From: Klebsormidium nitens
Lineage: Eukaryota; Plantae; Klebsormidiophyceae
Assembly (NCBI GenBank): GCA_000708835.1
Contig: DF237094.1
Span: forward strand, 62,001-126,000
Length of the DNA: 64,000 nucleotides
Direction of reading: 5' to 3'
The notes below the pieces were generated by a model. It did no database searches and was not told where the DNA came from. It was given only the letters and a program-made list of their open reading frames with translations. The position numbers and the translations under genes were made by a program. Below, piece by piece: positions 3,001-61,577 of the stretch. The first letter of the stretch is position 1. Each line of letters begins with the position of its first letter.

Positions 3001-5290
3001 AAGTCAACTGCAGACAAGAGGACCTTCCGAATACAAGCAGCAAATTAATCCTACTGAGGGCCAGGTTGATTCGAACTAGCAAGCCCCAAAGCGTTCAAAA
3101 TCATTGGCAGGGAAGTTCGTTCACTGGAACGGATCGCACCCTCTGAGGACATTCGGTGCACCAATCTGTAACAAAACAAGGTTTGAATATGCAAAGAAAT
3201 CTTTGAGGACTAACCAGTCGCAGGCGTGATTTGACTGCGGGCTCCGGGCGGCTGAGCACCGCCTGCCGTAAGGCTGGGAGCGCCTGTTTGCTTTGCCAGC
3301 AGCTCTTGTGCCGCGAAAGCCGTAAGCGCAGCCACAGAGGGGGAGACCTGATGTAAAGAAGAATGACGAATCCACATTACGAGACTAGAACAGCTCAGGG
3401 CAATTTGCCACAACCTTCCAATTGGCGGTTAGGGATGGCTAGATGACTAATGCATAGCGTCCCACATACTACCCCTTAGAGGGTTTGTAGGCATCAGCTA
3501 TCTGCATTTAAGCTGGTCAGCTGAAGACTCGAATCTGCGGGACCTTACCATTCAAAAATGCTTGTGAATATTGATGCAAAGAACAGTCTGATGCCACAAG
3601 CAGGATTGAGATTTTCAACGCACCGAAAGTCTAACATTGAAGCAACCTGCAGGCCCCCTTACTGTTCACTCACTGACTCTAGCTCCACCGCTTCCTGCGA
3701 AGAAGTGGCACTTTGTTAGTGTCTTCAAATAAAGAATGGATGTTCTTAGTGTCCCTACCTTCCTGGGGATACGGGCTTCTGGGGCCTCTGAGGGATCCCC
3801 CTGCTCGTCAGGACGTTCCTGGACCTCAGCCTCACGCAGACCAAGGCTCCGCAGTGTGTGGTCAATCTGCACAATCAAGCACCAAAGGTTGACACACAAG
3901 CCGGACAGCAGAAACTGCACCTTAGGGAACAAGGACACTCGGTAGCCAGTTGCGATATAACAAGTGCATGACATGAGAGAAAATCTGGCCGCTAAGAGCA
4001 ACCATAAATCTTTGCAAGGCAAATCGTTTAATTGTGCTTTTCAAAGGCTGGAGCTCTGTCAAACACAGCACGCTTGCAAGTCAACTAAAACTTGATGCTT
4101 GAGCCAACAAGGCATGAGAGGTTCTGGCTCCTTCCTGATCTTTCGATGCGCAGGAATCACCATAAAAGCTCCTCACAATTGAAACACAGACAGGCCCACT
4201 TCAACTGAAATCATCTACAGCGCTTGGGCAGGCAAGCAATCAATCCTCAGCACTGCACCGGCCAGGTTGAAATGATCATTGGACTTAGTATCTACCAAAC
4301 ACATTTTTGTGGCGTTTTGAAAGCAATTACACTTGATGTATTCTGAATTCCTGAAAGCAACAACAGCAAGAAGACACTCACCGCCCGTTTGGACACCAGT
4401 TCGTTTGGAAGCGTTTTTGACGCAAGGCGATAGACATTCTCGTAGGCCTCCGCCATCAAGTTATCCTCCACCTCGGTTGGGGGCCGCCCAGCGCGCACCT
4501 TGGCCAATTGAGATAGTGTCAAAAGGATGACAGACGTGCGGTCCAACAGAGCCTCATCGTTGTTGACACTGTTTCTCACGCCGTTGTCTGGAAAACTTCC
4601 CCTGCCCTGATTGGTTCCTCCTTCCCTGTCAGCGCTTGCATCAGCTGAATGCGTGTCTGCTTGAAGCGGTGTGCCAGAGCGGTGTGCCACCTCATATGCT
4701 GACTCGTTTGGAGTTCGCTGGTCCACATGCTCATCAGGAGGGCCTGCACCTTCAGAGAAGCCAGTCTCATATGTGCGGCCCTCCTTTGCAACAACTCCTC
4801 CATCAGCACCACCATTTGTGCCGCTTTCAGACTGCCCAGGCATATCCTCAATGGCCTCTACGCCATCACGTGGACTTTTGGTGTCCTCAGGCACCTCTGG
4901 CACAGCAGTCTCCGCTTCAGGAGTCATCGTTTCTGCTTCCTGCGCAGGAGTGCCTGGCAGGAGTTTAAAGTCGGTCGCTGTCGGTGTTTCATGCTGCGGT
5001 ACAGTGTCTCTCCCATCGGCGCTAGTCACTACATGCTTAGCTGGCCGGCTTTCCTCCTCAGTGTCAGAAACTCGTTTGCGTTTTGCACCAGCAGTGTCTG
5101 AAGCCACTCTATCAAGAACACGCTGCAACGCAGGCAGGGCGACGTTGAGCTCTTTCAACAAGCTTCCTACTTCAGCCAGAGTGACAGAAGCGATGACGTC
5201 GGTGTTTTCGCCGTCTGACTCTCCTAACTCTCCCAACTTTCCATTTGGAGGAGCTTCCTCCATTGCTGCTGAGACCTGCACCTCCGCCAT
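1..5290 (-). CDS. Multi-exon PHD finger protein (plant At3g20280/At1g50620-like family) with a coiled coil; 3' end lies outside the window
   Basis: The exon at 1-223 translates CPMC...CDVCERGYHTRC...WACPLC, a C4HC3 PHD finger. The first exon (ORF 4292-5290) contains VILLTLSQLAKVRAGRPPTEVEDNLMAEA, resembling the helical N-terminal motif of this plant PHD family. The phase-0 exons 1472-1637 and 740-862 encode a Gln/Leu-rich coiled coil (REQQQLLTQFRQVELIEQ...; VQLKLSQLRQQSVALQTHQQQL...). Further exons lie near 2400-2670, 3210-3348 and 3755-3867. Confidence 0.8.
820..1190 (-). repeat. Three ~140-bp tandem copies of a splice acceptor plus exon 5' end; only the copy starting at 862 continues into the real exon
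   Basis: On the minus strand, 'cttcag|gttcagctgaagctgtctcagctgcgg' (862) recurs as 'ctacag|gtccagctgaagctgtctagctacgg' (~1003) and 'cctcag|cttcagcggaaacggtgtctcggctacgg' (~1145). The flanking 'aggcgaacagcatgc(a/g)actctcc' is also repeated. Confidence 0.8.
1600..2080 (-). repeat. Four ~145-bp-period degenerate copies of an acceptor plus exon 5' end
   Basis: The motif 'ttgcgcgagca(a)cagcagctgc' from the real exon (starts 1637) recurs in decayed form near 1742-1775, 1890-1925 and 2040-2070. Confidence 0.7.
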
Positions 5291-13063: not shown

Positions 13064-14099
13064 TCAATGCTCTGTTGACGCCTGCTTCTGCAACCGTCTC
13101 TGCTTGCGCAACTTGTAACGCTCCTTGTCAGCAGCGCTTGAACATAAACGACATACATATCCGAGCCCATCCGGTGTTTTTGACGTCACCGTAAAACTCG
13201 CACGCTTGTTTCTGCTCGCCGCAGGCAATACACTTCTTTGCTTCCCTTGGAAGGTAAACTTGCGCACTCCGCCTTTTCTGTCTGATATGCGCCAACCTCT
13301 TGTTGTCGCAACTTTTGCAACAACTTTGACGCCCAACTGGACTCCTTGGATGTACACTGAACTGATCGGCATCTTTAACCTCGTCGCAGTGGTGGCAACG
13401 CAATGGCTGATCTGTCGGCATCCACCGTGGCCGAGCAGCATTCAATGCAGAGAGACAGGCTCTGCAGCAAGGTCCCGTCCGATCCTTGCTCCTAGCATTC
13501 CTTGGGAAATCTCTTAGTTCCTTAGTGAGCCCACACTTCTTACAAGCCTTAGCCCTCTCCCACGCCTCTGTCACACTCATTCCCAGGTGATGCAGCTCTT
13601 TCTGCGCGCACTTTGCCTGCAAGAGAGCCAAGCACGCTCGGCACACGTCAATCCGCCCGTCCATACTCGTAACTGTCTTTTCAAAGTCTACTATTGGCTT
13701 GGAATGCTGACAGTCAGGACATGTTTTCACCTGGGTTTCCAACGTACTTCCTGTGCTTCTAGCAGGTTCTGGCCCGGGTACTGTGCTGGCCCCCGTTGCC
13801 ACCGCTTGCACCCGTCTCTGGACCAATTGCCCCCTAGATTTTGCAGGCAACGGACGGCCCCCATCAGCTGACGTACTAAAGCTCAGAGTCAAACTCTGTC
13901 CACTGCCGAAAAAGGGGGTTTCACATCTCACAATCCTGCAAAACGGTAGCTGCTGATTAGCATGGATCCTTGATAGAACATCGCGCGTGGGCGCCACACT
14001 TTGGACCGCTGCATGCTGCACACCACCCCCCGACCTCCACACCTTTCTTGCCCAACCACATGCTTCGGCTTTCAGGTGAATCCCAGACGTGGTCGCCAT
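13064..14099 (-). pseudogene. Intronless 4x CX2C-X22-CX2C zinc-ribbon repeat protein, copy 1, frameshifted in the last repeat
   Basis: ORF 13128-14132, likely start MATTSG at 14099. Repeats begin KTCPDC, KACKKC, LRCHHC and KKCIAC. Repeat 4 is completed only in another frame (DGLGYVCRLC..., ORF 13064-13441), implying a 1-nt indel near 13172. Confidence 0.75.
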
Positions 14100-14569
14100 T
14101 TCAGCAGAGGAGGCGCTTGATATGACTAGCACGCACTCTCACTTGACGTTGAAGAAAATGTGTGGAAATTCTGCCACATTGCAGAGTGACTGTGAAGCTC
14201 GTCTATTAATACTATGGATCTAGCTGCTCGATCGAGCTAGGGGAATCACACTTCAAAACCCGTAAACCCGGGAGGTGAATGCGGCCGCGCGGAGCCCCGC
14301 GCTGGTTAGTCAATCGCCGCGGCCGCTGCGCCTAGAACCTCGGAATCACTGCACTTAATTAAAACTTTCAAACTCTAATAATTGCATCTCGTTCGTCCTT
14401 GATACAGTAAGATTAAGTAGGCCCGACGCTGATTTCGGTCAAATCAGGACAAGGAAGAGAGCCGTCTGACTGAACAACACGGCGCGCCCTAATAACCGTG
14501 ACAGCCCGTCTTCGCTTGGGTTTTGCACTAGCTGAGCCCGCCGAGCGTGTCAGCACATATATCGCAAGC

Positions 14570-17500
14570 ATGATGGTCCCATTCAATGCGCGGCTCTGAT
14601 TCAGGCAGAAGACATGGGTGCCAGCAGGTAGGATATGTAACTCTCATTGATACCTGATGCCCACCTGATGTCCCGTGAAATGGCTTGAACAATAAAACGG
14701 CAGGAGAGAATGTCGCTTTCTGCGCTTTTTCCCTGAAGCCAGCAGGTTAAATTTGTTCTATGACTTATAGTGTGCGATCAGATTTTCAGGGACGTACTAG
14801 GTCTGCAAAACATCAGTCAAGTGCTTTATGATAGTCTTGTCTCTTGTCATGTGTGGATTGACTGCGCCGTTTTCGTTTGCTTCTACTGTTACATTAGGTT
14901 TCTGCTCAGTGGTTTAGAAGAGTGCCAGTACTAGTCACTTGGACAAAAGCCTGCTGGAAAGAACCCATTAATCCGCGAAGTCGAGCCCACTGTTCAGCGA
15001 TACACTTTTGAACGTTAGTACAATCAGGCTCTGAGTTGCACTCAATGACCCTGATTCTGTTTCAGATCACTGGGTTCGCGCGTAGAGGTCTTTTGGAGTG
15101 AGCGGCAGCCGGCGCAGCAATGAAAGAACGTCCACGTAGTTCTCAGTCTAGCAAGAGGGGAGCAGGAGGACCAGATTCTGTAGGACTTCCATCACTTTGT
15201 ACATCTCCCACCAGGTTGCGCGTCTTCCACTGAAGGATGTAATCAAGCTCGAAGCAAGCCTTTCAAAATGTCTAAATATTTTTATCAAAGCCTTGCAGAC
15301 CTTTTTGTACCGAAGATTCATCAATACACAAAACTAGGTACCATTGAGGATCCTACAGCAGATGGCTCGACGTAGCAAGGTAATTTAGGACCTGCGATTG
15401 CTGTATTCCGATGGTCCCCGTTTCAGTGGGCTGACTCCATTCTCACGTCAAAGTGGCTCTAGCTAGCTGTATAGCCCAACACTTGAAGAATCTCAGTTGT
15501 TGAGCAATGTTCCGGCCTCTTTTTCAGGCTGACGGAGTATACAATGGCCTTCCAATTCGCACAGAAAGGGTTCCAAAAGCAGATTGAGTCTGGGGTGCAA
15601 CTGGAGGAGCCCTTCCACACGGGCATCCACATGACCGTCGACGAGTTCTGCCGTTGGTAGACAGCCAGACCGACTCGCGAAAACGTTGTTTGGCTGCACC
15701 ATGGGGAGGTGCTCATACTGGGGAGCTGGGACAGCCCGGTGCATCTGGTTGTTAGGAGGGCCGCTTTGGTGCTGATGAGCTCGGCGATCCGCAGACGTGA
15801 GCAGTGGAAGACGGCTGCAGCCCAAGCATGGTCGTTTTGTTTTTTGAGCTTGGCGACTCGGCGAGGTGACGCCAGTGGCAGCCAGAGAGAGGCGACCAGG
15901 GAATTGAACTCGAAGAGCCAATCGTTTTCGAGACAGGATGTAGTGGAGAGATCCACATAGGCGAATTTAGTTGCAGTGCTCTTTAAAACTTAAGTGCAAG
16001 CTCGGCGCAAGCCTCGGGGAGACTCACTGTGCTTGGAAACGGCCTGTGGTTGCTTGCTTCTTGACTGCGTTATCGAACGGACGCACATCATGAGCTTGGC
16101 CAAGATAAATCTTTGTTGGAGGAGCGGAACCGTCGAGCGGCTCCAGCTTGATCTGCTTGAGCTCGTCGGGAAAAGAGCTGCAAGATGAAGTCCCTACTTT
16201 CGTCCGAAATGATACGAGAATGGAGGCAAGTACTGCTCTCAGTCAATATGCTAATATGCTTATATGTATGCGGCTCGCTTATTTTGTGCAGTGGCAGCAG
16301 AGCCGCTCGGGGAGATGCCACTACGCGACTTCAGGGGTCAATTCCGCGCCGCCTCCGGTTGCTAGGAATACTCTTTGGCTGCGTGCCACCTGTCCTGGAA
16401 CCATAAAGAACGTGCAACTCCCAAAATCGCCCTGCACGCCTTCGAGCCGTGGGCAAGCTTTCATGCAGTTTGTCGGCCTTCGGTGAGTTTTTGACGTTTG
16501 CGCTGACGCTTTGAAAAAGATTGGAGGGTTTTACTGATCCCTCGTGAGTTGTGCATAAAACGAGAGAGAATCTCACAAGTGCAGACGCGCTGTGACGTGG
16601 GCTTGGACGTCCTACAGCCTTTTGAAATTTACCCTGATGATACTGATTCTCAGTGTTTGAAATCGTTCCAATTCTGCTTGACGCGTTTTGGCCGTTAAAT
16701 GATTGGACAATCCGATGCCCGCAGAAACGAGTCTAGAAGTTGTCATTCCGTTTGTGGCAAATACGAAAAGCCATGTTCGGTCATGAGATTGCGCCTTGCG
16801 TGCTCAGAGAGCGAGCTCGCTCTCAGCGCCTATCTACCCAGATGCTAAGCGAAATTGCCTTTCACTACTATCTCGATCTCCCTTCACTACTATCTCGACT
16901 TTCTTCTCTTATTCGATTGATTTAGGAGAAGCCTCCTGGTTGTAACTTTTACATCACTGATTCGGGACGTCGCCTCGATGTCCCTCAAGATCAGCCGTTG
17001 GGCGGAGCTCCCCGATTTCAGTGCTACGAGCCTCTCTCTTTGATTTGCAGGATTTTGGAGGAGTTTCATGATTGCAACATCTTTCTGGGCTTCTCTCCGA
17101 GCCCTACCTCTGTCCAGGCGTTTACCATGTGGCGCGACCCCGCAGATCCGAACGCGGCAGCGGTCGTGCAAAGCGAGATAGTCACGGTGGGTGATAAACT
17201 GTCTATTCCCCTGGCGGTCATCTTTCAGGGGAGGGAGAATATCCCGAGCAATTGCAGGTGAGCACAAATCCGGCCAATGTAACTCGGGGGCAACTCTGAC
17301 TTGACAGTTGTATCGCGGAAGACAAGCGCCTGGGGACGGGTGGTGTTGATATGGTGTCTAAGGCGGCTTACCTGGTAAGTACGAAATGCGAAGCACATGA
17401 CTGGGTTGCAAATCCGGGTTCACTTTTACTTTTTTCTTGTTCGTGGGGTTTTAGAGTTTGTCACCTGAAAGAGTTGTGTCACTCAGAATTCACCAATCAT

Positions 17501-17700
17501 GGCAGTACATGAGCACATAGTTTAGAACGGGCCCTCAGTTCATGCCGCAGTGCTGGATACGATTCGTCCTGACTACCTACAAAACCTAGCAAGTATTCTC
17601 CCAAGTGAAGTTGAACCCAAAACTGCGGCCAAGACACTCGGTTTGAAACGGCAGAATTGTTGTTCTCGGGCGTCTCAGGTTTGGTATTGCTGCCGGGCCT
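14570..17700 (+). pseudogene. Uma2/DUF820-like endonuclease pseudogene, copy 2 (segmental duplicate of 5790-8930)
   Basis: Collinear similarity to copy 1 in exons and introns. Translates MTVDEFCRW*...VVWLHHGEVLILGSWDSPVH (TAG at 15658-15660), a frameshifted PPVLE segment near 16385-16410, and the exon TSVQAFTMWRDP...LSIPLAVIF (17050-17257). Confidence 0.55.
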
Positions 17701-19722
17701 CATCTGACATTGCGAACGCAAAACTTATTGGCAATTCCTTGATGTGATCATACAGGCAAGTGCCAATCGGAATGTGAGATTGGACCTGGAACTGGCCCAC
17801 ATAATCTATTTAGAAAGGCTCGGGTACTACGAGAACGGATTTCCACCCGAGTAGTAGAGAGCACTCTTAAGTACGATCAGAAGTGGACGTTCCCTGCTTT
17901 TTGCGCCGGCCGGCGTGTATCATTCTCGTGAGCGTGCGCTCGTAATTAGCTCTTAGCGTTTAAAGTACATGTTCGACTTCAAGATTACGTATACGTGCAT
18001 GGAAGGCTCACATAGAGTCTGCAAAGGACATGCACTGCATCGTCAGTTGCTTGGCGCATGCCGCATAATGCATCGGCGCGAGCTAGCCACTATCAAAGCT
18101 ATACGCGCCACTTATTGTATTCGCAAGAGCGTCCGACCAATATCACTGTTCAACGCATGCCAGGTTATGAACGTACCCAATAGACTGTGCATTTGATCAT
18201 GAGCGTTGAGCTTGACCTTTTGAATCTATTGACGTGCTCTACTAGGCTACCACATGCCCGGGCCAATTTCGTGAAAGTCCACACGAAGGCCCATGAATTG
18301 GCTAATCATGTCAAAGTTGCATAAAAATCGAAGTCAGAACGAAAACGACTTTTTAAAAGCTGCTATTGAACATGCAACGCCCCGTTGTATCATCATACTG
18401 AAGAATGCTCAATGGATTGAAAATGATCTGCAATTCGCAACCGTGGCCTTTTCAGTTGCCTACCGATGTCCTGGCCTACTGATGTCCTGGATTCAATCCC
18501 ACTACGCCCCACGTGCTCCAGCCCATTGATATTGCGATGCTAGCGGGAGAGCGCTCTCCTTCAATATCAATACAGTCGATCTCCCTCGGCCAAGAACATT
18601 CGCTCAGGACTTACAATTTGAATGTTGTTTTGGTCCACCTAGGCTACCGAGCCTGCAATATAAAAGGAAGGGTATGAGCACGCTTCCGTGTTCTTGGGTT
18701 GCCGACAATTGACGATCAACGAAGCCCATCGAAACGGATGACTATTGCGAAATTCAACCAGATGGTAGGACAAAATATGCTGCCGGCTTCATGGGTCTCC
18801 CAATGGGGTTTCGCCGGGGAACGAAAAGGTACTGCCGGAGCTCTTCCCCGCGAGCTGTTGTCGATTTGCCACCCGCCCAATTGTCTGCTCTACACATTTT
18901 GGACCGCAACTGAGATTTAGTGCCTGACAAGTCTGCAAACGTGTCCACTGTCACCCTCAAGGACTTTGACGAGAAAAAGTTCCGAGCGAACGAGTCGAGT
19001 TAGGTGAGAGGACGCACAAAAAACGTGCAGGGTGCCACTGGCGCAGCGCATTGAACTGACCTGAACTCCGAGCGCGAATCAGAGACATATGGAGGGTCGT
19101 GGCGTAGTTGAGCAGGGGATGCGTTCGTTCCGCTTGGCCCCGGGTAAACTGCGAAGAAAGAGTGGACACATCAGAGACAGCGCTGCGAGCTAATTGATTT
19201 GCAACAGTATAATCGTTTCGTATAACTGCTAGCACTGTCAAAGCGTGTGCATGTAGCTGCAGACTTCAGTATAATGGCAGTAAGATCTCCAGCGCCGTGT
19301 TACGAATCTGCTGCCAGCGCACAACGATTTGAATGATTGCGCACTAGCACCACGTCGGAATGAAGCATGGGAATGCTGCTCACGAAAGGCGCGGCAGATT
19401 TAAGAGGAAGAAAAGGTTGGACATAAGCGCGCAAAGAAAACCGTCAAGATCACGTTTGCCTGTGTGTACAACCGGAAATACATGTCGCTACTCCAGTGTT
19501 TGTCGGAAGGGTCCGATGTAGGCAGCGACCACAAGAGCACACGTCCTGCTTCTTGGTCGCCGAGATCCGCGCTCCACAAAAAGTACAGATTGTCTTCTTC
19601 ACCGTTCTGCAATTGGCTCGGGCAAAGATTGACTCGAACAGGCAGACTTCCTTCATCACACAAACAGCGCGCTATCTTGGGCGGCATGTAGAGTTTCTGG
19701 GCGGTTCACGAACGGTACGTAC

Positions 19723-20866
19723 CTCGGGGTGGCGGCTGCGGTGTGCGACGGCCCCGCTGTTGCCGGTGCGGTGGCCGCTCTGAGCGCCTCCCAGGTCACG
19801 ATTGTCGCCCACACGCGATGATTGCCAGGAATGCCCGCTTTCCCCTTCTTGGCCAGCTCGTATGTGTCGCCTCATGCTCCTGTAGTAGACAACAACAACT
19901 TTAGATAGTAGCCCGGATCTGCTGAACAGTCAATTCTGTTCATCACAAGAGCGCGTGTTGAGGTTGGCTGTTACTTTTATGGGATCGAAGTGATTTTGGA
20001 AAAGTTGGATGCGGAGGCACGCATAAGCGTGCATAGTGGAGTGATATGGCGTTTCGCTTCCCGCTTTAGCAGTCTGCCCCAGGTGACAACAACATCTTGA
20101 GTTCTCAACGTACATCAAACCCTGGCAGCCTGATCTTCAAACACGTACAAGGAGCGTGCTCGCGCTTACCTTGTGCAGGCCAACAGCAGTGGCCTTCCGC
20201 GCGCGCTAGGGTCCTGTGCGAGGTGCGTCAGCGTGGGATGCACGTGCACCGCATACCCGTTGTGCGGACGTCACCATGGCCACGCCCGGCAAGATCCATG
20301 CACACACCTGCGGCAAACCGGAAGCCAAGCTCTTAGCAGCTCTTCCGGCACAGTCCAAAGGCATCTTTATTGAGCTTCACCAGTGCACGGCAGGAAAGTT
20401 TGGTGCTTTGCATGAAACGACCTCAAGGTGGGTACGTAGGCAGAGGGGGCAATGCCTATTGGGTTCGACGAGAGTACTCTAAATCAATCCGCATCGTAAC
20501 ACTGAAGCCGTGGACACTGAAGCCCCGCTTTCGTCGCTTTGACGGATCCAACCGTTACAATGTCGACTGGCAACCGCAAGACAGAACGAACAAGACGCTA
20601 ACCACCGAACCGGCCTTATAAAGTGCGGCGTACGCTGGGACGGCAATGTCCTGACAGAATCCTGACGAGCTTTTCGCACCCCGACTTCGCTGAGGTACGG
20701 CCCTGTGAACATGGTGACAACGTCTCTGCCGAGCCGACGGACAGCGCCGGGACAGAACGGAAAGAGCAGCCCCGGAAAGGAAGGCGTTACCGGGCGGGCC
20801 GCGCTTACTTGTCGGATGGCGTCGCTGGGCCTTTCTGGCCATGCTCTAGTGAGCGTCCGCAGCACC
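19723..20866 (-). pseudogene. Spliced gene fragments of unknown identity, probably degenerate
   Basis: GC-rich exon-like blocks bounded by YAG and GTAAG/GTACG at 20809-20866, 20170-20307 and 19723-19879. The protein-like frames (HNGYAVHVHPTLTHLAQDP; GDTYELAKKGKAGIPGNHRVWATIVTWEAL) are interrupted by stops. No family recognised. Confidence 0.25.
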
Positions 20867-23011
20867 CTGCAGCTCCTCTTTGCTGATCGCCTGCAAAGGA
20901 AGGTAGAACGGATTCAAGATCCGAACCCGACCCACAATTTCCAAACGTTCAACGACTTTTTGAAGGCAACTTGAGATCCATTTCAATTGTGCGGTGCGAT
21001 GCACAGATTGGCATGCACTTTACGAGAGTTTGCAGGTCTACAAGCAAGGTAGATCTTTGACTGGTTGGTTGCGGACGTTTGGAGCGATCAAGGACAATCG
21101 GAATCCGCTCATGACGCCAAACTCACTTGAAACAAGCGCTACGCAAACGTGGCCGCAGGACCAACACAGGCTGGTTGCGTGACAACTTGGCTGACTCACG
21201 AGTTCGTTTAGGGCACGGATTCTGGGAGCCTTCTGCATGCTCACCTTCCAGAGCATCTCACTGAAGGGCCGTGCGAGATGGAGAGCTTGAGTAGTCTCGG
21301 CAGCGCTCAGAGCCTGTACAGCAAGACGGGAGTTACAGTCCTCAACGTCGACGAATTGAAGACCAATCCAATGTAAAGTCACGTTGGCTCGAACGACCCT
21401 GTCACCTAAACGGCAGCTCATGTTGTCACTGTTCGTCACAAACTGTGCTGTCCAAGGTTGGCTCTTGTCTCTAGGAGCTCGAATCAATATCACCGTCCTT
21501 ACAGAAGACTCCTCAAAGCGAGTCACGGTGGGATGCCAAGTCTCCGCTTTGCAGTTTCCAAGCAGGAACACAAACAGAAAACTCAAACCATTCTCCATGA
21601 TCGAGACGATGCTGTCTTCATGAGCTGCCACGAGGTCAATAACAGCGGAACGACCGAACCACAAAATCTGAATCTATTTGTGCAGGCCGTTGGAAAAAAT
21701 GAGGGCACTGACTGTACTCCCTCAGGAACACACGAAGTAAACGGTTGACCACAATAATGAACCAGCCTCTAAGCATATCACGCACCCCACGATATGCGTA
21801 GGGTCAACATCTCGAACCCACTCCGATCAAACTGGAGGCTGAGAGTAAGTCTTCGCTTTGTCTCTCCTCGGGGCTGACGGCTTACATTCCCGTCGGCACG
21901 AGCTGTTGTGTTGCAGGCCGTCCAAATGGTGAAATCGTATGTGCCCGGCTGACAAACTGGTTGTTCCAATCCTCCCTCCTGCCAATCAGAAGAAAGCCAT
22001 TATTAGGAGGATTGAATTCGCAGCGGTTAGCTTAGGAACTTTTCTCCTTAGCCTAGTGGGCTGAGAGCTTCCCTACATCTGATTTGCAATAAGAGTTCAG
22101 CCAGGCCGAAAAAACTCCCTTGAAAGTCGTGACCTGAAAGGCAATCCTGTGCTTGTCATGATTTCGAAGTCCCACGACTATTAGCCCACTCTGCTTTGCT
22201 TAACTACTGAAGATTCACTTTGCACTCAGATGAAAGACCGATTCGTCACAGAAGATCAATGCATCATTTGTCCGAAATCAGGTCAGCGTCAGGACCGAAA
22301 CCCACGCCCTTGCTGGAAGGGCGCAAGCTCAGAGCTTCTATCAAGTCATTTGACAATGGGCCCCATGTTAATGAAGAGAGGCGTCCCGGCTCAGAAGGGG
22401 CTGGCGAGACGAGAAATGACAGAAGTTGTCGCTCACGTTTACGTCGGCATTGGCCTCTCAAGCGCTTTTGACTTGCCGCTTATTCACTCACACATGCAAC
22501 GGGACAGTGGCCGTCACAGATCAAAAACACAATTGGATGGAAAGACCAGATCTCAATCCTCAGTCAATGTACTGCGTAAACATAAGCGCCAGAAATTGTA
22601 TCTGGACTCTAAAGTTTTCAAAAGAGCTTGATCAAGAGAAAAGCAAGCAGCTTTCATCGTGAACGGGGCAAGGTTCGAACCAACTGCCACCGTTCTCTAC
22701 GCCCTTTCCTCCCAAAGTGTACAAAGTCAAAAGTTAAGCTAAGCTTTGAGAAAGCAGGTATGATAGGTTTCCTACTCACCTGAAACACCATGATGACGGT
22801 AGAGTCCAGGATAAACCATGGAAGCCCTTTTGAAGAGCGCTGTGCTTTTGACGTATTCCACTCTCGACTCCGTTTCGCAATAGCCCAAACCTGGCAGCTA
22901 GACTGCTGTTGCTGGCCTCAAAAATAGGCCCACACTCAGCACAGGCGCTTTCTTGTTCCGCCGGCCAGGCCCGGAAAGTGTTGGAGAAGCAAATGAGGCC
23001 GTGGCAAAAGA

Positions 23012-24106
23012 CTACTGTGACAAGGAAGCACTGTGTAAAGCAAGAGAGCCCAGGCTCTCAACGTCATTGCTCTTCTGAGGCTCGCCTGTTGCACCCCTTT
23101 TCTGTTTGCTCATCTCATAACGCTTCTTCTCACATGACTTACATGCGGTGTCCAACCCATCGATTGCTCCATTTTGAGCATAGAAGTCGCACGCTGGTTT
23201 ATGCTTGCCGCAGGCACTACATTTCTTCGTTTCCCTCAAAAGGTAAATCCGTGTTTCTCGCCTTATTTGTCGTGTCTGCTTTCTAGCTTCAACCGTGCAA
23301 CGCTTGCAAATCCCAGCACGCCCACTTGGATTTCGTGCGCCTGAGGAGAAATGAGTGGAAGCTTTGATCTCCCCACACCACTTGCACTGCAGTGGCTGGT
23401 CTGTTGGAACCGACTGGGGCCGAGCAGCATCCAACAGGGAGACGCAGGCCCTACAGGAAGTGCGCGTCTGGTCTTTGCCATAAGAATCCCTTGCAAAATC
23501 TCGGAGTTCCTTTTTGAGCCCACATTTCTTACAAGTCTTAGCCCTCTCCCATGCTTCCGTCACGCTCAATCCCAGGTGATGCAACTCTTTCTGCGCACTG
23601 CTCATCCGCAGGACAGCCAAGCACGCTCGGCACACATCTGTCCGCCCATCCATACTTGTCACTGTCTTTTCAAAATCTACCGTGAGCTTCGAATGCTGAC
23701 ACGCTGGGCACAATTTGACTTGGGTTTCCAGCGTACATCCTGTCTGTCCTGTGATTCTGGCTGTTTCTGCGTTGGGCACTTCACTGGCCCCCTCCCCCCC
23801 AGCTTGCGCCCATCTTTGAGTCAACTGTCCACCTGAGCTTGTGGCCGCAAAAGGAAAGGATTGGCCCGCATCAGCCGCCGTCGCAAACCTTAGAATTGCA
23901 CCCCGTCCACCACCCAAGAAAAACGGTGTACAATTCCCAATGCTACCGAACGGAATCTGCCAAATCGCTCCGCTCTCTTTGATGACAGCGCACATGGGCT
24001 GTGCATTTGGCGCTGCTGCGCCTCAAACACCACCGCCCGAAACCCACAGCTTTCTTGCCCACCCAGCGACTTTGGCTTTGATGTGCATACCAAATGCGGA
24101 TGCCAT
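23012..24106 (-). CDS. Intronless 4x CX2C-X22-CX2C zinc-ribbon repeat protein, copy 2, with a nonsense codon in the leader
   Basis: ORF 23012-23995 has four complete repeats. The upstream in-frame ATG at 24106 (MASAFGMHIKAKVAGWARKLWVSGGGV) aligns with the copy 1 N-terminus but meets TGA at 24023-24025, where copy 1 has Gln. Confidence 0.75.
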
Positions 24107-25453
24107 TGTACTACAGCAGACCTAGAACTCATTGTCCAGAGATAAAGGCGCTTGATTGTAATTTGTATAGCAAGCTAGGCTGGCCGCCACGAGGATGGCT
24201 CAAGGTGATGCAGCCTCGATGACTGCTCCTTCAGGCTTCAGGGCTCGAATTGCTTTGCCCCTGGGAGAGGCTTTGTTGCTGAAGATGAGTGTCAAACTAG
24301 ATTGGCAGCACGATATGCTGCACCCGGCATGCCATTTGATCAAATTTTTATCAGAAGTTACATAAGCTATAATGTCTAATTATAGGTGATTTTGCAGTGA
24401 TAAGTTCTGATATAAATTTGTGATCTTTGCCGGTTTGCTCAAGGTTTGTCAGGGTTGCGGCCCGCGGGTGAGGAACTGATCGAACTGGTTTAAACAATTG
24501 CGTTTGTTTCCTACACAATCCGAACGGACTGGTGATGGACGTTTGTCCTACGGCGCGACAAATTTGGCAGTTAAAATTACCTGTAAATTCAACGGCTTGC
24601 ATTCTGCGTATACGGTATAACGCACCGGTATCCGGCCAGGTGACAATGGGCGACTTATCATGTGCCTGCCAGGGCCCACCGGCCGCCTCCGCTCTCAGCC
24701 TCTTGATCTGAGACTCTCACCTATTGAAGGTCTTGACACAACGTAAACGAAACCCATACCCAGGCGACAAGGGTACCCCCTGAAACAAACCGGAACTACA
24801 ATCGACGGTCCGCGACAGCTTAACACACGTGTGAAACCCAATTGTACGCCCTGCGACAGTCGGCCGACCGACTAGACGTGCACAATACGACAAACGAGTC
24901 AGAATATGCTGTACACACTTTCTTGTGCCAAACGGCGAGCCGATATTTCAGGGCGAGGAGCACAACTGCGAAACCGTACACCAGTTTTACAATGCCCGGT
25001 TAAAGTTCCTGGAAATGCGATCGCGCCGCCATCTTCTCGCGCCCAGAAACACGACATCTTTAAGGGTACTGCGGCGGCCAAACGCCGGAGAAAATACAGG
25101 GCGGAGTCGCCACTCATTTCCAACGTCGTACTGTGGCTTTGCACGGTTCCATAACGAAGGCTTTCGCCATTTTCAATAACGCGTACGCTCGCGCGCATTT
25201 GGGGCGCACACTGGACAGCAAGAAAATGGCATGCCAAAAATGCTGACTCCAACGGATTCCGGTGGGCTTCGGCGGATCGCATTGGCCCTGTGAAGACTAG
25301 CAATGACAGCATTCGCTGAGGCCTGTACCGGAATCCGCACAAGCAGGAGCCACCCGGGCGGCCCCCCGGTGCCCAGCTGTGCACAGTGCAAAGCCCGTCA
25401 ATGCAGCAGAAATGAATTCTGTCAGCTAAGTACGGTAAAAGAAGAGCTCGTCA

Positions 25454-26506
25454 ATGGCTTCCGTTGCAATGCCTTTGAAGACAGGCTGCCGGGCCTGGCT
25501 GCCCAGCCACAATCCTTGCAGGCACGGTGGTGGCGCTTCCGTGGTTGTGGAAAGTGCGCCGCACGGGCTCGCTCTTGTCCCAGCAGGCACTTGCTTATCT
25601 CAGCAACTTCCTTTTCAAAGTCTGTTAAATAGCTCCAGCCGATTCAGTGTGCGAATTGTGACATGTCGGAAGTCTGCTAGAACTGAAGCAAGGGCAGGCA
25701 AAGAGCGGCTGTTGCCGAAAAGAGCACCACAGGGCGATGCACAGTCATTTCCTGAAAGCACAGCGGACAGTGGTACAGAGAGAGAAAGCACCCAGCGTAT
25801 AGCGCCGCCCCCTTCAAGCGGGGTGGTTGACTCCAATAATGTTGTGAAGACCTGCACACAATGCAAACGTTCAAAGGTGTTCGTCGATTTTGAGAAGACG
25901 GTGGTGACAGTGGACGGGCGGACCGATGAATGCCGGGCTTGCTTGGCGGTGGTGAGGGCACAGCGGGCGAGGAAAGCTCTGCATCATCTCGCTTTGAGTG
26001 TGGAGGAGTCGTGGGAGCGGGCCAAGAGGTGTACTAAGTGCGGGCTCGTGAAGGAGTTCCGCGACTTCAGCCGGCGCGTGAGGAACAAGGACGGGACGTA
26101 TGGGTGTTGCAGGGCATGTCACTCTGATATCATTGTGCGCGCTCGCAGACAAGGGGGGCCGCATAGCCCGACAGACGAACCGCAGCGGTGTAGTTTATGC
26201 CTTGAAGTTAAAGAGGCGGACCACTTCTTCCCCGACGGAGGCCAGCTCACTGGGAGGAAGTCTGTCTGCAAGACTTGCTTTAGCGGGCAAAAGGCAGAGC
26301 AATATCAAACGGCTAAGGAAGTGCAGATTCACGTCTGGAAGGCGACTCGGCGTTGCTGGACGTGTCAGCAAGAAAAGCCTCGGTCTGAGTTTTACAGACG
26401 GCCGCTCAGTATTGAGGGGCTGTCCAGCAACTGCATCGCGTGTCTGAGAATCTATGAGAAGACCCGTCACGAAATGGGGAAGGAGAGAGGGCCTCTGGAC
26501 GGCTGA
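25454..26506 (+). CDS. Intronless 4x CX2C-X22-CX2C zinc-ribbon repeat protein, copy 3, intact (350 aa) with a transit-peptide-like N-terminus
   Basis: ATG-to-TGA ORF. Repeats: KTCTQC..ECRAC, KRCTKC..CCRAC, QRCSLC..VCKTC, RRCWTC..NCIAC, each with 22 residues between the CxxC pairs. The N-terminal ~70 aa are rich in Ser/Ala/Arg and nearly free of acidic residues. Confidence 0.85.
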   Translation: MASVAMPLKTGCRAWLPSHNPCRHGGGASVVVESAPHGLALVPAGTCLSQQLPFQSLLNSSSRFSVRIVTCRKSARTEARAGKERLLPKRAPQGDAQSFPESTADSGTERESTQRIAPPPSSGVVDSNNVVKTCTQCKRSKVFVDFEKTVVTVDGRTDECRACLAVVRAQRARKALHHLALSVEESWERAKRCTKCGLVKEFRDFSRRVRNKDGTYGCCRACHSDIIVRARRQGGPHSPTDEPQRCSLCLEVKEADHFFPDGGQLTGRKSVCKTCFSGQKAEQYQTAKEVQIHVWKATRRCWTCQQEKPRSEFYRRPLSIEGLSSNCIACLRIYEKTRHEMGKERGPLDG

Positions 26507-28693: not shown

Positions 28694-28785
28694 TGAGTCA
28701 AAAGTCCACCAACGTCCAAAGTCCAACCAACGCGTCCAAAGTCGAACCAAAGTCCAACCAAGTCCTCAAACCGGCCAAATATCCC
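28694..28785. repeat. Degenerate short tandem repeat of a GTCCAA(A/CC)-type unit
   Basis: aagtccaccaacgtccaaagtccaaccaacgcgtccaaagtcgaaccaaagtccaaccaagtcc. Confidence 0.6.
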
Positions 28786-29028: not shown

Positions 29029-32000
29029 TTACTGATACTGGGGAGCAAGCTCTCCTTCCCGCACAATATAATCTTCCTCAGGAAGAGGCTTTCCATCAAA
29101 CCAGCACTCGAGAATCTTCTTGGTCCCGGCAGCGTAGCGAGCCTGCATGCCAACAAAGCCGAATTGTTGCATAAAAGGGCTCGTCAAAAGCATTCCCTCG
29201 ATTCCCTCGACAAACAACGACGAAACATTATAGTACGCGCATCGTTGTGATTCAAAAGCAGGTTCGCAAGAAGGCCTCACAATGAGGGAATCCGGGGTAA
29301 CGTGATCGGAACTCGCATTGAATGCCAGCGAATATTACAACAGCCAACCAGCCCAGACTTTTGTCCAGATGACGCCTGTCGAGGCAAAGAGCCAAGTGAC
29401 CGGACACTGGCTAATGGCAGATGGACACATACTCTGTGAAAGAGAGCATTAAGTGAGCCAGGGCTTCGAAGACTGCCGGCTTTGTAAATGTTCAGAAGAA
29501 GCACATAAGCGGAGTGTCTCATGAGATGCCACGTGGCATCGCACACTGACCTGAGCATCGAGCGTAGTTCCCGACAGATGGGGGGTCATCGCGTGGTTAG
29601 GCATGTGGCGCCAAGGGTGGTCTGCAAACGAGACGGTAAGCTGTGAAAAGCGAATCAGGCGAAATTGACTGTCTCGTTGGAAAGAACAGATGCTTCTTTG
29701 GCCCAAGCGAGCGGATTGACAAGAACGGAAAACGTGCGTCAGAAGCATCATGGCCACTGTTGAACCGAGATTGCAGATAAACGGAAAGAGAGCCGTTCAT
29801 CGGACAGAAAGAGCAAGCAGAAGAAGCCTGGTGTATTTTGACTAGAAGATGACGGCCTTCCGGGGCCCCACGAAAATGGACAAACGAGTGAGACGTCCCC
29901 AGCACAAGCTCGATTGGGAATCAACCAGGCTTGCTGCAGAAGGAATACCTTGAAGTCGACAAAGAGTCGGCGTCCTTTTTAAACGCGAGGTGTTCCGAGT
30001 GCTCGCAGGAAGTCAAACAACGTCAAGTGTTTGAATCTGAGAGGGCGTCAGGGCTCTTGGCATGCTTGATAGTTTCGCCGGCAATTCCAAAAGCGGGCCT
30101 TTGAAAAAGAGGGAGGACGGCGCAATGTCTCTTTCTGAACATCCGACTAGAAAGGTGCAAACAGTATCGGTTCTAGGAGTTCAGTTGACCACCTAAACGG
30201 TACCTGAACGGTACGCACCTTTGGGCGGCGGCTGGGGATACCAGACGTCCCCACCGTAGCCGTTGAGCTGGCCGCTCTCGAGCGCCTCCACGATCGCCTC
30301 GCGGTTCACGATTTCTGCGCGCGCGTTATTGATCAGGTACGCGCCCTTCTTCATCTTGGCCAGCTGCTCCTTGCCGATCATGTGCCTGTGCGAGGAACTG
30401 ACCGCGATCAGACTCGGCTGATCTAATAGTAATTTCAAGTTTTGCAGGTCTCGGAGTTTTACGACTTGTATGCGTCTTTGCTTAGCCGCGAATGAGGGGT
30501 ACCGGAAACGCAGCACTCAGTTGCTAACCACATTCGAGAATTCAATTTGTTTCTGCAGTCCAGTTCTTGTCATGGCGGATAGAAGATCAGGTCGAGCGAT
30601 GACGTCAATTCTCTCCGGTACGCTTTCAGACCAGCAAAGAGATCGCCAATCGACGCGAGATCAGCCGCTCATTGGGACGTAGGAAGTTAAAGGGAAGACA
30701 CCAACTCAGCATCCAATATCGTTGTTCAATGACGCATGTTCAGAGCAGTTGCAACAGAGCGCGAAGAGGTTTGAGCTACATTGACATTCAATCCGCTGCA
30801 TCCGCTGCAATGCAGACCTTAAGAGTATCGGCCATAAGTGCGGGATTTTACAATTCCGGACGGGTAAAGCAGAAACGTCACTCCGGACCTAATGAGGCAG
30901 TCCACCGAGCACGCCAGGACTTCACCACTTCTGTTTCCGGATTGTTTGAACACTATTCCGGACACCCCGTGTCAACTGACCGACTGAATTGGTTAGGTCC
31001 GGAAAAAGGTTTTTGCTCTGCCCGTCCTAAATCGCGATTTCCGGAGTTAGGGCCGATACTCTTATAACCTTACCTGGTCTTGTCGGTGAGGGGCACGTTA
31101 ATTGACACGACGTCGCACTTGCTGAGGAAGGTGTCGAGGTCCTTCTCAAACGTAGCGCCGAACTTCTCGATGTTCTCGTTCTGGTGGCGCCCGTAGTACA
31201 GCAGGTTGCAGTTCCAGCTCTGCGGTTGAGAAGGCCAAAAAGGGCAGATAAAAAAAAAAATTCTTGATCTGCCCCGTGACTTGGTCAGCAAAGCAAATGT
31301 ATGAGAGACGGGGAAAGCTTTTTAATGGAATCGTACGAACGTGGTTAAAGACATCCGTTCTGTAGCGCGCACCGCACAGCTGGCCCCGGTTCAGAAGGAA
31401 GATATAATCTGCACAGTAATTTTTGCCCACTCGGAAGTCAAAGGAAGAGAAGCTCGAAGCAAATGGCAAGGGTTCAAAAGATGAAGCGAAGCTAGAGACC
31501 GATTCTTGCCCGACATGAACAAAACCGGCTCTCATGTTTTGATCCAAGACGCTCTTGCAAACTGTCAGTGGTTCCCTGTCTTTTCCCGTTCTTCCTCCAC
31601 CTTCGCAAATGCAAAGATTGCAGAAACGAACACTATCTCGCCTTCGCCAATTCGGGAACGCAAGATTCCGAACACGAAATCTCACCTGCAGGCGCTTCAT
31701 CATTTCCTGGCCGATCCTGCCGGCGCCCAGCGTGCCCACGGTCTTACGCTCCAGGTCGTACGCCTTGTAAGCGACCGCGGCCACGTTCCACTCGTCGTGG
31801 ATGATCTGGAAGCGAGCACGAAAAGTCAGGGCATTTAATGTCAGACCCTTACCAAATCAAAAGAGTCAATCCTCCAAATCGGGTCGAACGATCGGCATGG
31901 TGCTGTGAGCTAAGGATTGTCTGTAGCGGAGAGGTTTCAATGGCTGTCAAACTGCGCACAATCGTACAAGAAACATTTGCTTAGACCAGCGCATGAGCAT

Positions 32001-60026: not shown

Positions 60027-61577
60027 TCACGGCCGCCGGAAGCGGATAGGCCCTCTGAATGCGGCGTCTGGATCCAGGGTGTTAGAGCCCTGTAAAGATT
60101 ACATAAGTCAAGTTCAGACAGAAGAGCCTCCCCTTATTTGCTGGTGACGGCGTGCTCTAAGAGGTTTCATCAGACAAGTCCACCCTGCGCGAACAAAAGG
60201 CCATGAACAACTTCGGAGAATGGACGGAGGGGGATAGAAATTCATCTCTTGAGGAACGGTTGTGGGGGCTCATCCCGTGTATGTTTGTGACTGATCCTAT
60301 TAGTCATGCGATGATCAAGAGATAGAGATGCCTTCATAGAGATGAAAAGCTACTTTCTAGTTGCTCTCCCCAAGCTTCCAAAAGTGTCAGGCAGCAGACT
60401 GCATGGCTGCCGCTGACGTACTAGGGAGAGACGCTGTTGCGGGCAAACAACACTACTCCGCCACAGTACGAATGGCAAACAGAGGAGTCTGTCCCTTTCA
60501 CTTCCTCAATCTCTTTGAACGCTCCAACCACACTCAGATGTCAAGATCGCTTGCGCCTTTGGCCCATTTTCAACAGGATCATAACCCCCGGTGGTCTCAT
60601 TCAGTGCACAAAGTACTGTTGAAGCTCAGGAAATACATTTGCCAAGCCTGCGAGCATTAGTCAGAAAGTAACAGAACTCCCTTGCTACAAGCATAAAAAT
60701 CTTACTGCCAGCTATCAGGGAGGGGGCCCCCAAACCTGGTTATCAGAATTGATGTGCCTTTGCAAAATTACGTACCCCAAGGACGTTCCTGATTCATACT
60801 AGATTGATCATTTTCTGGCATTGCGGAGAAAAGAATACTGGGTTTTGATGCAGGTGGTGAAAACTGGAAACCGATATGGATCCAATGGCAGCCCTGAAAA
60901 GAACAAAACAAGGCAGAACACACTGAAGTGAGGGCTACAACAAGATTTTGATGCTCGTGTCGAAGTACAGAACTTGTAAAAGTTGAATTACTTGCACCAC
61001 CATGGCGCTCATTGACAACATCTAAACCTCTTCTGATGGTCATGCCCACCTGCGTGATCCTGAGCTGGCCCGCCTTGGCCAGGCTCCGACCAACGTCTCT
61101 AACCTGCTCCATGATGTCCCTCCATCCGACCCCGCCGAGTGCCCGAGCTACCTCAGACGGACAGATTGACGATGTGGCTGCCCGCTCACTCAACATTTTT
61201 AGCGCACAATGCTCAATTGCTTCGGCGCCCGGGATGCAGTCGCTGACATGGACTAAATTGTCTGGTTCTTCTCCACATACTCCTGTTTCCGCATTCTGAG
61301 ATGCAACTAGGCGCGGGCCCAAGTCAGGAGCCCTCGATGTGACGTCTGAACCAGCAACAGGACTGTCTTCTTGCCTGGACGCTTGTCCTGTCTTTCCATG
61401 CCCACGAGATGTTTCGTCGAGCACGTTCCCCTTCTTGCCCTTCTTCCTGTTGGATGAGCTTCTCCCCTTGCTGCCAGTCTCACCCGTTCTTTTCTCTTTC
61501 CCTGACCCACGTGTGCCACGGCTTCGAAGTGAGTGACTCACTTCTTCCTCTTTTCTCTTCTTTGGCTGTGGGGACAT
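60027..61577 (-). CDS. DUF3253-family winged-helix-like protein with a basic disordered N-terminus (2 exons)
   Basis: Exon 1 (61577-61050) ends SICPSEVARALGGVGWRDIMEQVRDVGRSLAKAGQLRITQ at a GTGGG donor. Exon 2 (60089-60027) reads GSNTLDPDAAFRGPIRFRRP*, completing the typical ITQ.G..DP...GPIR signature. Confidence 0.85.

Follow-up and report, generated by a model that had tools for sequence, protein, structure and literature searches.

Zinc-unit genes at the Klebsormidium nitens locus

The window analysed here, a stretch of 64,000 nucleotides (nt) of contig DF237094.1 from the streptophyte alga Klebsormidium nitens, contains three members of a lineage-specific algal gene family (copies 1-3 in Table 1), each of which encodes a leader of about 125 residues followed by four zinc units. 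From its sequences the family is well defined, and its function is putative. A first-pass annotation of the window had reported three paralogs within 13.5 kb; open reading frames (ORFs) were found for all three, and tblastn searches with each copy against the whole window located these three loci alone. The coding region of every copy is a single continuous ORF, so that copies 1-3 have no coding introns, in agreement with that annotation.

The spacing CX2C-X22-CX2C is exact in the 11 intact units (11/11) of the three copies. The unit pattern proposed in the first pass, K-x-CX2C-x3-K-x3-[DE]F-x8-[DE]G-x4-CX2C, stands in its overall form, with the correction that the gap from [DE]F to [DE]G comprises 7 residues (x7) and not x8; unit 3 of copy 3 has HF and TG in place of [DE]F and [DE]G. 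The leaders are related as well, with the GGG and Q(L/I)PF motifs seen in 3/3 copies. At the protein level copies 1 and 2 are 56% identical, while copy 3 shares 38-40% identity with either. The similarity of copies 1 and 2 at the DNA level is confined to the coding region (75% over 300 nt), which argues that their duplication is old. The family has expanded by tandem duplication, and we would only guess that the spacer between copies 2 and 3 holds a divergent promoter common to both.

Table 1. Positions of the zinc-unit genes and of their parts in the window (nt)
Feature	Position	Strand	Description
Copy 1	13064..14099	-	ATG at 14099; leader and units 1-3 intact; frameshift inside unit 4
Copy 2	23012..24106	-	ancestral ATG at 24106; TGA at 24023-24025; 327-aa ORF from ATG 23995 with four intact units
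Spacer between copies 2 and 3	24107..25453		1.35 kb; copies 2 and 3 head to head
Copy 3	25454..26506	+	intact 350-aa ORF; leader, residues 1-131; four-unit zinc domain, residues 132-345
Copy 3, leader	25454..25846	+	predicted disordered; first half acid-poor; GGG and QQLPF motifs
Copy 3, unit 1	25853..25942	+	C134-C163, CX2C-X22-CX2C; followed by family-specific helix LHHLxLSVEExWERAK
Copy 3, unit 2	26030..26119	+	C193-C222
Copy 3, unit 3	26189..26278	+	C246-C275
Copy 3, unit 4	26354..26443	+	C301-C330

As assembled, copy 3 is the sole intact copy, and copies 1 and 2 carry one lesion each, which represents either recent damage or an assembly error. In copy 1 the reading frame shifts by 1 base in a run of five A, somewhere in about 13173-13182. 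The first frame ends at 13128, before the last CX2C is reached, and the shifted frame continues to a stop at 13064-13066. Because the shifted frame still encodes an intact DGL...CX2C and a basic tail, the lesion should be either very recent or a homopolymer error of the assembly. The true start of this copy is the ATG listed in Table 1 and not GTG 14132. In copy 2 the leader is cut by the in-frame TGA directly past the GGG motif, and the ORF restarts at an ATG 10 codons after it; if the TGA is real, the first 37 leader residues are lost and the destination of the protein could change.

A search of the 10-30 kb part of the window revealed no inverted repeats of 30 nt or longer, the ten ORFs between the copies matched no Pfam family, and a further ten ORFs examined elsewhere in the window matched no transposon or viral Pfam family. 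Thus, an embedding of the copies in a transposon, named in the first-pass annotation as an observation that would speak against its reading, is not visible. The ORF at 31146-31784 on the minus strand contains an NAD-binding fragment of a 2-hydroxyacid dehydrogenase, consistent with an exon of formate dehydrogenase, which points to ordinary host genes near the copies. Elsewhere in the window, the 269-aa ORF at 60768-61577 (minus strand) matches DUF3253 (PF11625, E-value 2e-17), and the acidic, low-complexity 332-aa ORF at 4292-5290 (minus strand) matches DUF7797 (PF25073, E-value 1e-15) near its C-terminus. A short tandem repeat with a period of about 11-20 and a CCAAAGTCCAA-like unit occupies positions 28697-28765, 2 kb downstream of copy 3.

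Conservation of the family and the predicted fold of its domain

The profile search of 1.84 billion representative sequences reported 13,068 matches at E-values of up to 1e-3, 94 of them at E-values of up to 1e-30. The family proper comprises about 50 clusters (at 50% identity) of proteins of about 280-440 aa, which match in one stretch that takes in all four units and a portion of the leader. The alignment of 43 full-length members shows that all 16 Cys are kept and that the number of units is always four; column by column, each of the 16/16 Cys is at least 90% conserved across the aligned family members. In the cluster look-ups an organism was named for one member only, GAQ85847.1 from K. 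nitens, and a further word search based on the profile of the 43 members brought no addition. NCBIfam and PADLOC provided no match for the family.

A quick tree, with support values from the Shimodaira-Hasegawa-like approximate likelihood ratio test (SH-aLRT) only, groups copy 3 with the members P0001-P0003 (support 100) and copies 1 and 2 with P0012 and P0014 (support 99). P0002, of the copy 3 type, and P0012 and P0014, both of the copy 1/copy 2 type, are all intact and all come from a Logan contig of 22,229 nt. Since the contigs of these three sequences have the same size, it is probable that the three-gene cluster is conserved intact in a relative, at about 57% protein identity.

These observations bear on the possibility that an integrated giant virus or mobile element left the copies behind and that they are now decaying, devoid of host function and intron-free as recent arrivals. 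Such an origin would accommodate the frameshift or premature stop in two of the three copies, the absence of introns in a region described in the first pass as intron-rich, the finding that the closest array-type relatives are giant-virus proteins (see below), and the report of core genes of nucleocytoplasmic large DNA viruses (NCLDV) and of integrated giant-virus genes in the genome of K. flaccidum (PMC5294986). However, when copies 1 and 2 are compared (dS about 0.9; comparisons involving copy 3 are saturated), the ratio of nonsynonymous to synonymous divergence (dN/dS) amounts to 0.30 for the zinc region and 0.53 for the leader, which indicates that constraint acted on both copies during most of their history, and purifying selection acts on the zinc region. 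Moreover, about 50 diverged clusters retain the 16 Cys and the leader, subtypes like copies 1 and 2 and like copy 3 recur as intact ORFs, apparently on one contig of a relative, and neither transposon or viral families nor flanking inverted repeats accompany the copies. The scan of IMG/VR and of JGI metagenome contigs with the family profile also revealed no relative. We therefore consider decaying leftovers very unlikely.

The AlphaFold model built with 12 sequences predicts a disordered N-terminus of 128 residues and individually folded units, with a predicted local distance difference test score (pLDDT) of 70-94. When the domain was modeled on its own, with an alignment of 54 sequences, the pLDDT reached 94 and the predicted template modeling score (pTM) 0.84, from which the four units are predicted to form one rigid body. 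In the predicted unit a zinc knuckle is followed by a β-hairpin and a helix that starts from the second CX2C, an arrangement that resembles a treble clef. The Foldseek search of the PDB with the whole domain identified no counterpart (best E-value 1e-2, template modeling (TM) scores of at most 0.21, for Hpy99I and the Stc1 structure 2LUY), and VIA-align against 48,161 chains likewise reported no whole-domain match, its best hits (Z-score up to 5.5) covering single units only. A search of the solved structures with the sequence profile of the family returned only a match to cytochrome c (E-value 0.26), which was dismissed as due to chance. The domain is strongly basic in all members tested (50/50), with a net charge of +15 to +31 (median +22) and an isoelectric point of about 9.6; 13 of its columns are at least 80% K/R, and one aromatic residue is conserved per unit.

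Relationship to viral nuclease modules and to Stc1

The zinc unit and the zinc module found in HNH/endonuclease VII proteins of phages and giant viruses are homologous; the resemblance to the phage proteins had already been pointed out in the first-pass annotation and is confirmed by the searches. In PHROGs every unit matched phrog_1035, 2633, 2340 and 2255 (annotated as endonuclease VII, HNH and endonuclease) with E-values of 1e-15 to 1e-26, and the matches cover just the N-terminal, non-catalytic part of those profiles; two units jointly matched phrog_5558, a family of 130 positions labelled "Lar-like". The first AlphaFold model, used as a query against BFVD, matched giant-virus proteins over 150-250 aligned columns (E-values 6e-15 to 1e-9), among them proteins of Clandestinovirus, Pithovirus, Medusavirus and Tunisvirus, many of which are named HNH endonuclease and some "Zn-finger protein". 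In the protein atlas the domain adjoins Uroviricota clusters with Stc1, DUF6510 or YonG_N. The N-terminal modules of the viral nucleases share with the algal unit the CX2C-X22-CX2C spacing, the K..F..DG(L) residues, the period of about 54 residues and the arrangement in arrays. In contrast, the viral nucleases contain 1-12 units, often with an HNH or endonuclease VII (EndoVII) core at the end, and lack a leader, whereas in the algal proteins an N-terminal leader precedes the units, which always number four, unit 1 is followed by a helix specific to the family, and no nuclease is present.

The absence of a catalytic domain, as claimed in the first pass, is confirmed by the lack of HNH, HNH_5 or Endonuclease_7 matches in the aligned family members (0/43), in which Pfam detects only Stc1; a pattern search for the EndoVII core in 159 proteins, run without the window copies, matched none of the P-numbered family members. 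Among the wider set of matches a nuclease does occur. The tier below the family proper consists of thousands of proteins with arrays of 3-12 units of the same X22 spacing and the same period; these matches come without source names, and the nearest named look-alikes are viral. Up to 13/46 array-tier proteins exhibit a Pfam HNH, HNH_5 or Endonuclease_7 domain, and a looser pattern search found DHxxP or DHxH downstream of the array in about 20/46. The alignments of the array-tier proteins to the algal profile extend over units 2-4 or 3-4, whereas unit 1, like the helix that follows, is specific to the algal family.

The EndoVII core that terminates P0067, P0094, P0103 and 11 other viral-type array proteins itself fits the pattern CX2C-X24-26-CX2C, DHxH taking the position of DF-x-K in the unit. 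The idea that the unit is a dead EndoVII core was examined by aligning 451 units with 14 EndoVII cores in hhalign, which reported a probability of 9%, and homology is unsupported; a common fold class is the most that could link unit and core.

Units unaccompanied by a nuclease also occur in viruses. A Vibrio phage protein of 285 aa contains two units and then an HNH-like tail, while gp5 and gp6 of Gordonia phage RobinSparkles (L001:1474-2150) contain two units each and nothing more. Both are annotated as "HNH endonuclease", and yet no HNH Pfam domain was found in either, gp6 matching DUF6510 and Stc1; the annotation was probably carried over from fused relatives. Together with DUF6510 (PF20120), YonG_N (PF27269), PHROG 5558 and the Pithovirus "Zn-finger protein", they form a group of uncharacterised viral proteins that consist of units only, without a catalytic domain. 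The algal domain, built exclusively of CX2C-X22-CX2C units, is similar to these arrays; however, the phage examples that were read have two units, no leader and a place in virus genomes, whereas the algal genes are located in a host chromosome. We found no paper describing the family in the literature on the Stc1 domain (with HNH, giant viruses or Klebsormidium) and on DUF6510; the earlier statement that no characterised family has this architecture has to be qualified, as GAQ85847.1 bears the automatic UniProt/UniRef label "Stc1 domain-containing protein" and nuclease-free arrays of 3-12 units are abundant among the profile matches outside the family.

As regards the role of such modules, removal of the zinc ribbon from phage zinc-ribbon HNH nickases weakens their activity and relaxes their specificity (PMC3592412). 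This result would fit a DNA-binding role, with the reservation that the homology of those ribbons to the unit discussed here is not established. One might also imagine that the host uses the proteins as a decoy or guard to counter HNH endonucleases of viruses or of the homing type, whose target sites or partners the nuclease-free module would occupy, so blocking cleavage. The algal proteins do possess the same module as the viral nucleases with the catalytic part absent, and the family is expanded and fast-evolving (median terminal branch of the tree 0.62 changes per site), as expected of genes engaged in conflict. Nevertheless, the purifying selection on the zinc region argues against this role, the family matches no known defence family, and nothing positively indicates a decoy, which makes it highly improbable in our opinion.

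The only Pfam family matched by the window copies is Stc1 (PF12898), with 28.3 bits for copy 2, which exceeds the gathering cut-off of 24.8 bits, and 22.9 and 19.9 bits for copies 1 and 3, which fall below it; at E-values below 1e-3 the match was found in 16/43 family members. Stc1 of Schizosaccharomyces pombe (PDB 2LUY) resembles the algal units in having two CX2C...CX2C sites per domain, so that the 16 Cys of the four units are the equivalent of two Stc1-type domains with eight Cys and two zinc sites each. The proteins could accordingly be nuclear or cytosolic adaptors of the Stc1 type or chromatin proteins, whose units would bind protein (Argonaute, chromatin modifiers) or nuclear DNA and whose N-terminus would be a disordered linker. 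Apart from the Pfam match, this alternative is consistent with the presence of 2LUY among the best fold matches in the PDB and with the basic helices between the units, which could serve as nuclear localisation signals. Yet the S. pombe protein has one tandem finger and a long C-terminal tail and bridges Ago1 and CLRC (PMC2875855), whereas the algal proteins begin with a leader, combine four units into one rigid body, are strongly basic and end in a short C-terminal tail. The fold match is weak (E-values 3e-3 to 4e-2, TM scores of at most 0.31), the matches to viral nuclease-associated modules are far better, and acid depletion over about 100 leader residues, typical of presequences, is seen in all members. 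On balance, we regard the adaptor alternative as somewhat unlikely.

The leader and the putative function

As the first-pass annotation had proposed, the leaders resemble organelle presequences, in that their composition is acid-poor and rich in Ser, Thr, Ala and Arg. Their first 100 residues contain 3-6% acidic, 10-13% basic and 16-18% Ser/Thr residues, and the acidity doubles just before the domain; the sequences are hardly alignable across the family, and the composition is uniform. A [VI][RKQ]A motif, similar to the site of the stromal peptidase, occurs in 22/43 leaders against 9.8 expected, a number reached by 0/1000 shuffles, in a statistic that treats related and hence not independent leader sequences.

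We tentatively propose, at a little less than an even chance, that the family members are non-catalytic, nucleic-acid-binding, organelle-imported proteins that descend from a viral or mobile module, where we infer the nucleic-acid binding, the import and the viral origin. According to this proposal, the poorly conserved leader of about 100-130 residues would most likely be a chloroplast or mitochondrial import signal, and the strongly basic domain of about 215 residues would consist of four treble-clef-like zinc units packed as one rigid body, with four Zn per domain predicted from the 16 conserved Cys. The viral module presumably anchors the HNH/endonuclease VII enzyme on DNA, and the algal proteins may have kept the binding module without the nuclease, which makes non-catalytic binding the most likely activity. 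The whole four-unit domain would then bind DNA or structured RNA as a single surface, probably inside the organelle. The giant-virus genes reported in K. flaccidum (PMC5294986) make a viral source plausible rather than demonstrated.

Several observations weigh against this proposal. S. pombe Stc1 is the only characterised member of its Pfam family, and its tandem zinc fingers bind protein (Ago1) and not nucleic acid (PMC2875855). Two of the three window copies carry lesions, the leader of copy 3 does not contain the [VI][RKQ]A motif, and the leaders could simply be disordered regions. The taxonomic range, moreover, is documented by the single named organism mentioned above.

The first-pass annotation had likened the proteins to pentatricopeptide repeat (PPR) and octotricopeptide repeat (OPR) proteins, with which they share nuclear encoding, presequence-like N-termini and the organization as a multigene family. 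The comparison does not extend to the repeats, as 43/43 aligned full-length members contain exactly four units, and these are predicted to pack together as a single rigid domain (pTM 0.84). In PPR and OPR proteins the repeats are helical, vary in number and read one RNA base each, whereas the zinc units of the algal proteins are always four and belong to one domain; an extensible array of variable number is not supported, and no modular recognition code is in evidence. We also considered a more specific scenario, in which a streptophyte alga captured a homing-nuclease zinc module of the giant-virus or phage type, fixed it as a rigid four-zinc domain with an import signal, and expanded it into a new class of organelle regulators that bind DNA or RNA in a sequence-specific manner and are unrelated to PPR, OPR and mTERF proteins; taken as a whole, we judge this scenario unlikely.

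If the proteins are indeed imported and bind nucleic acids, an alga closely related to land plants would possess a kind of nuclear-encoded organelle factor that had previously escaped recognition, and one built from a viral module instead of helical repeats. Once the ligand is identified in a single tractable case, a very large and so far uncharacterised domain family (the 13,068 profile matches, with arrays of up to 12 units) would be explained, and it would also become apparent whether the arrays confer target specificity on homing nucleases.

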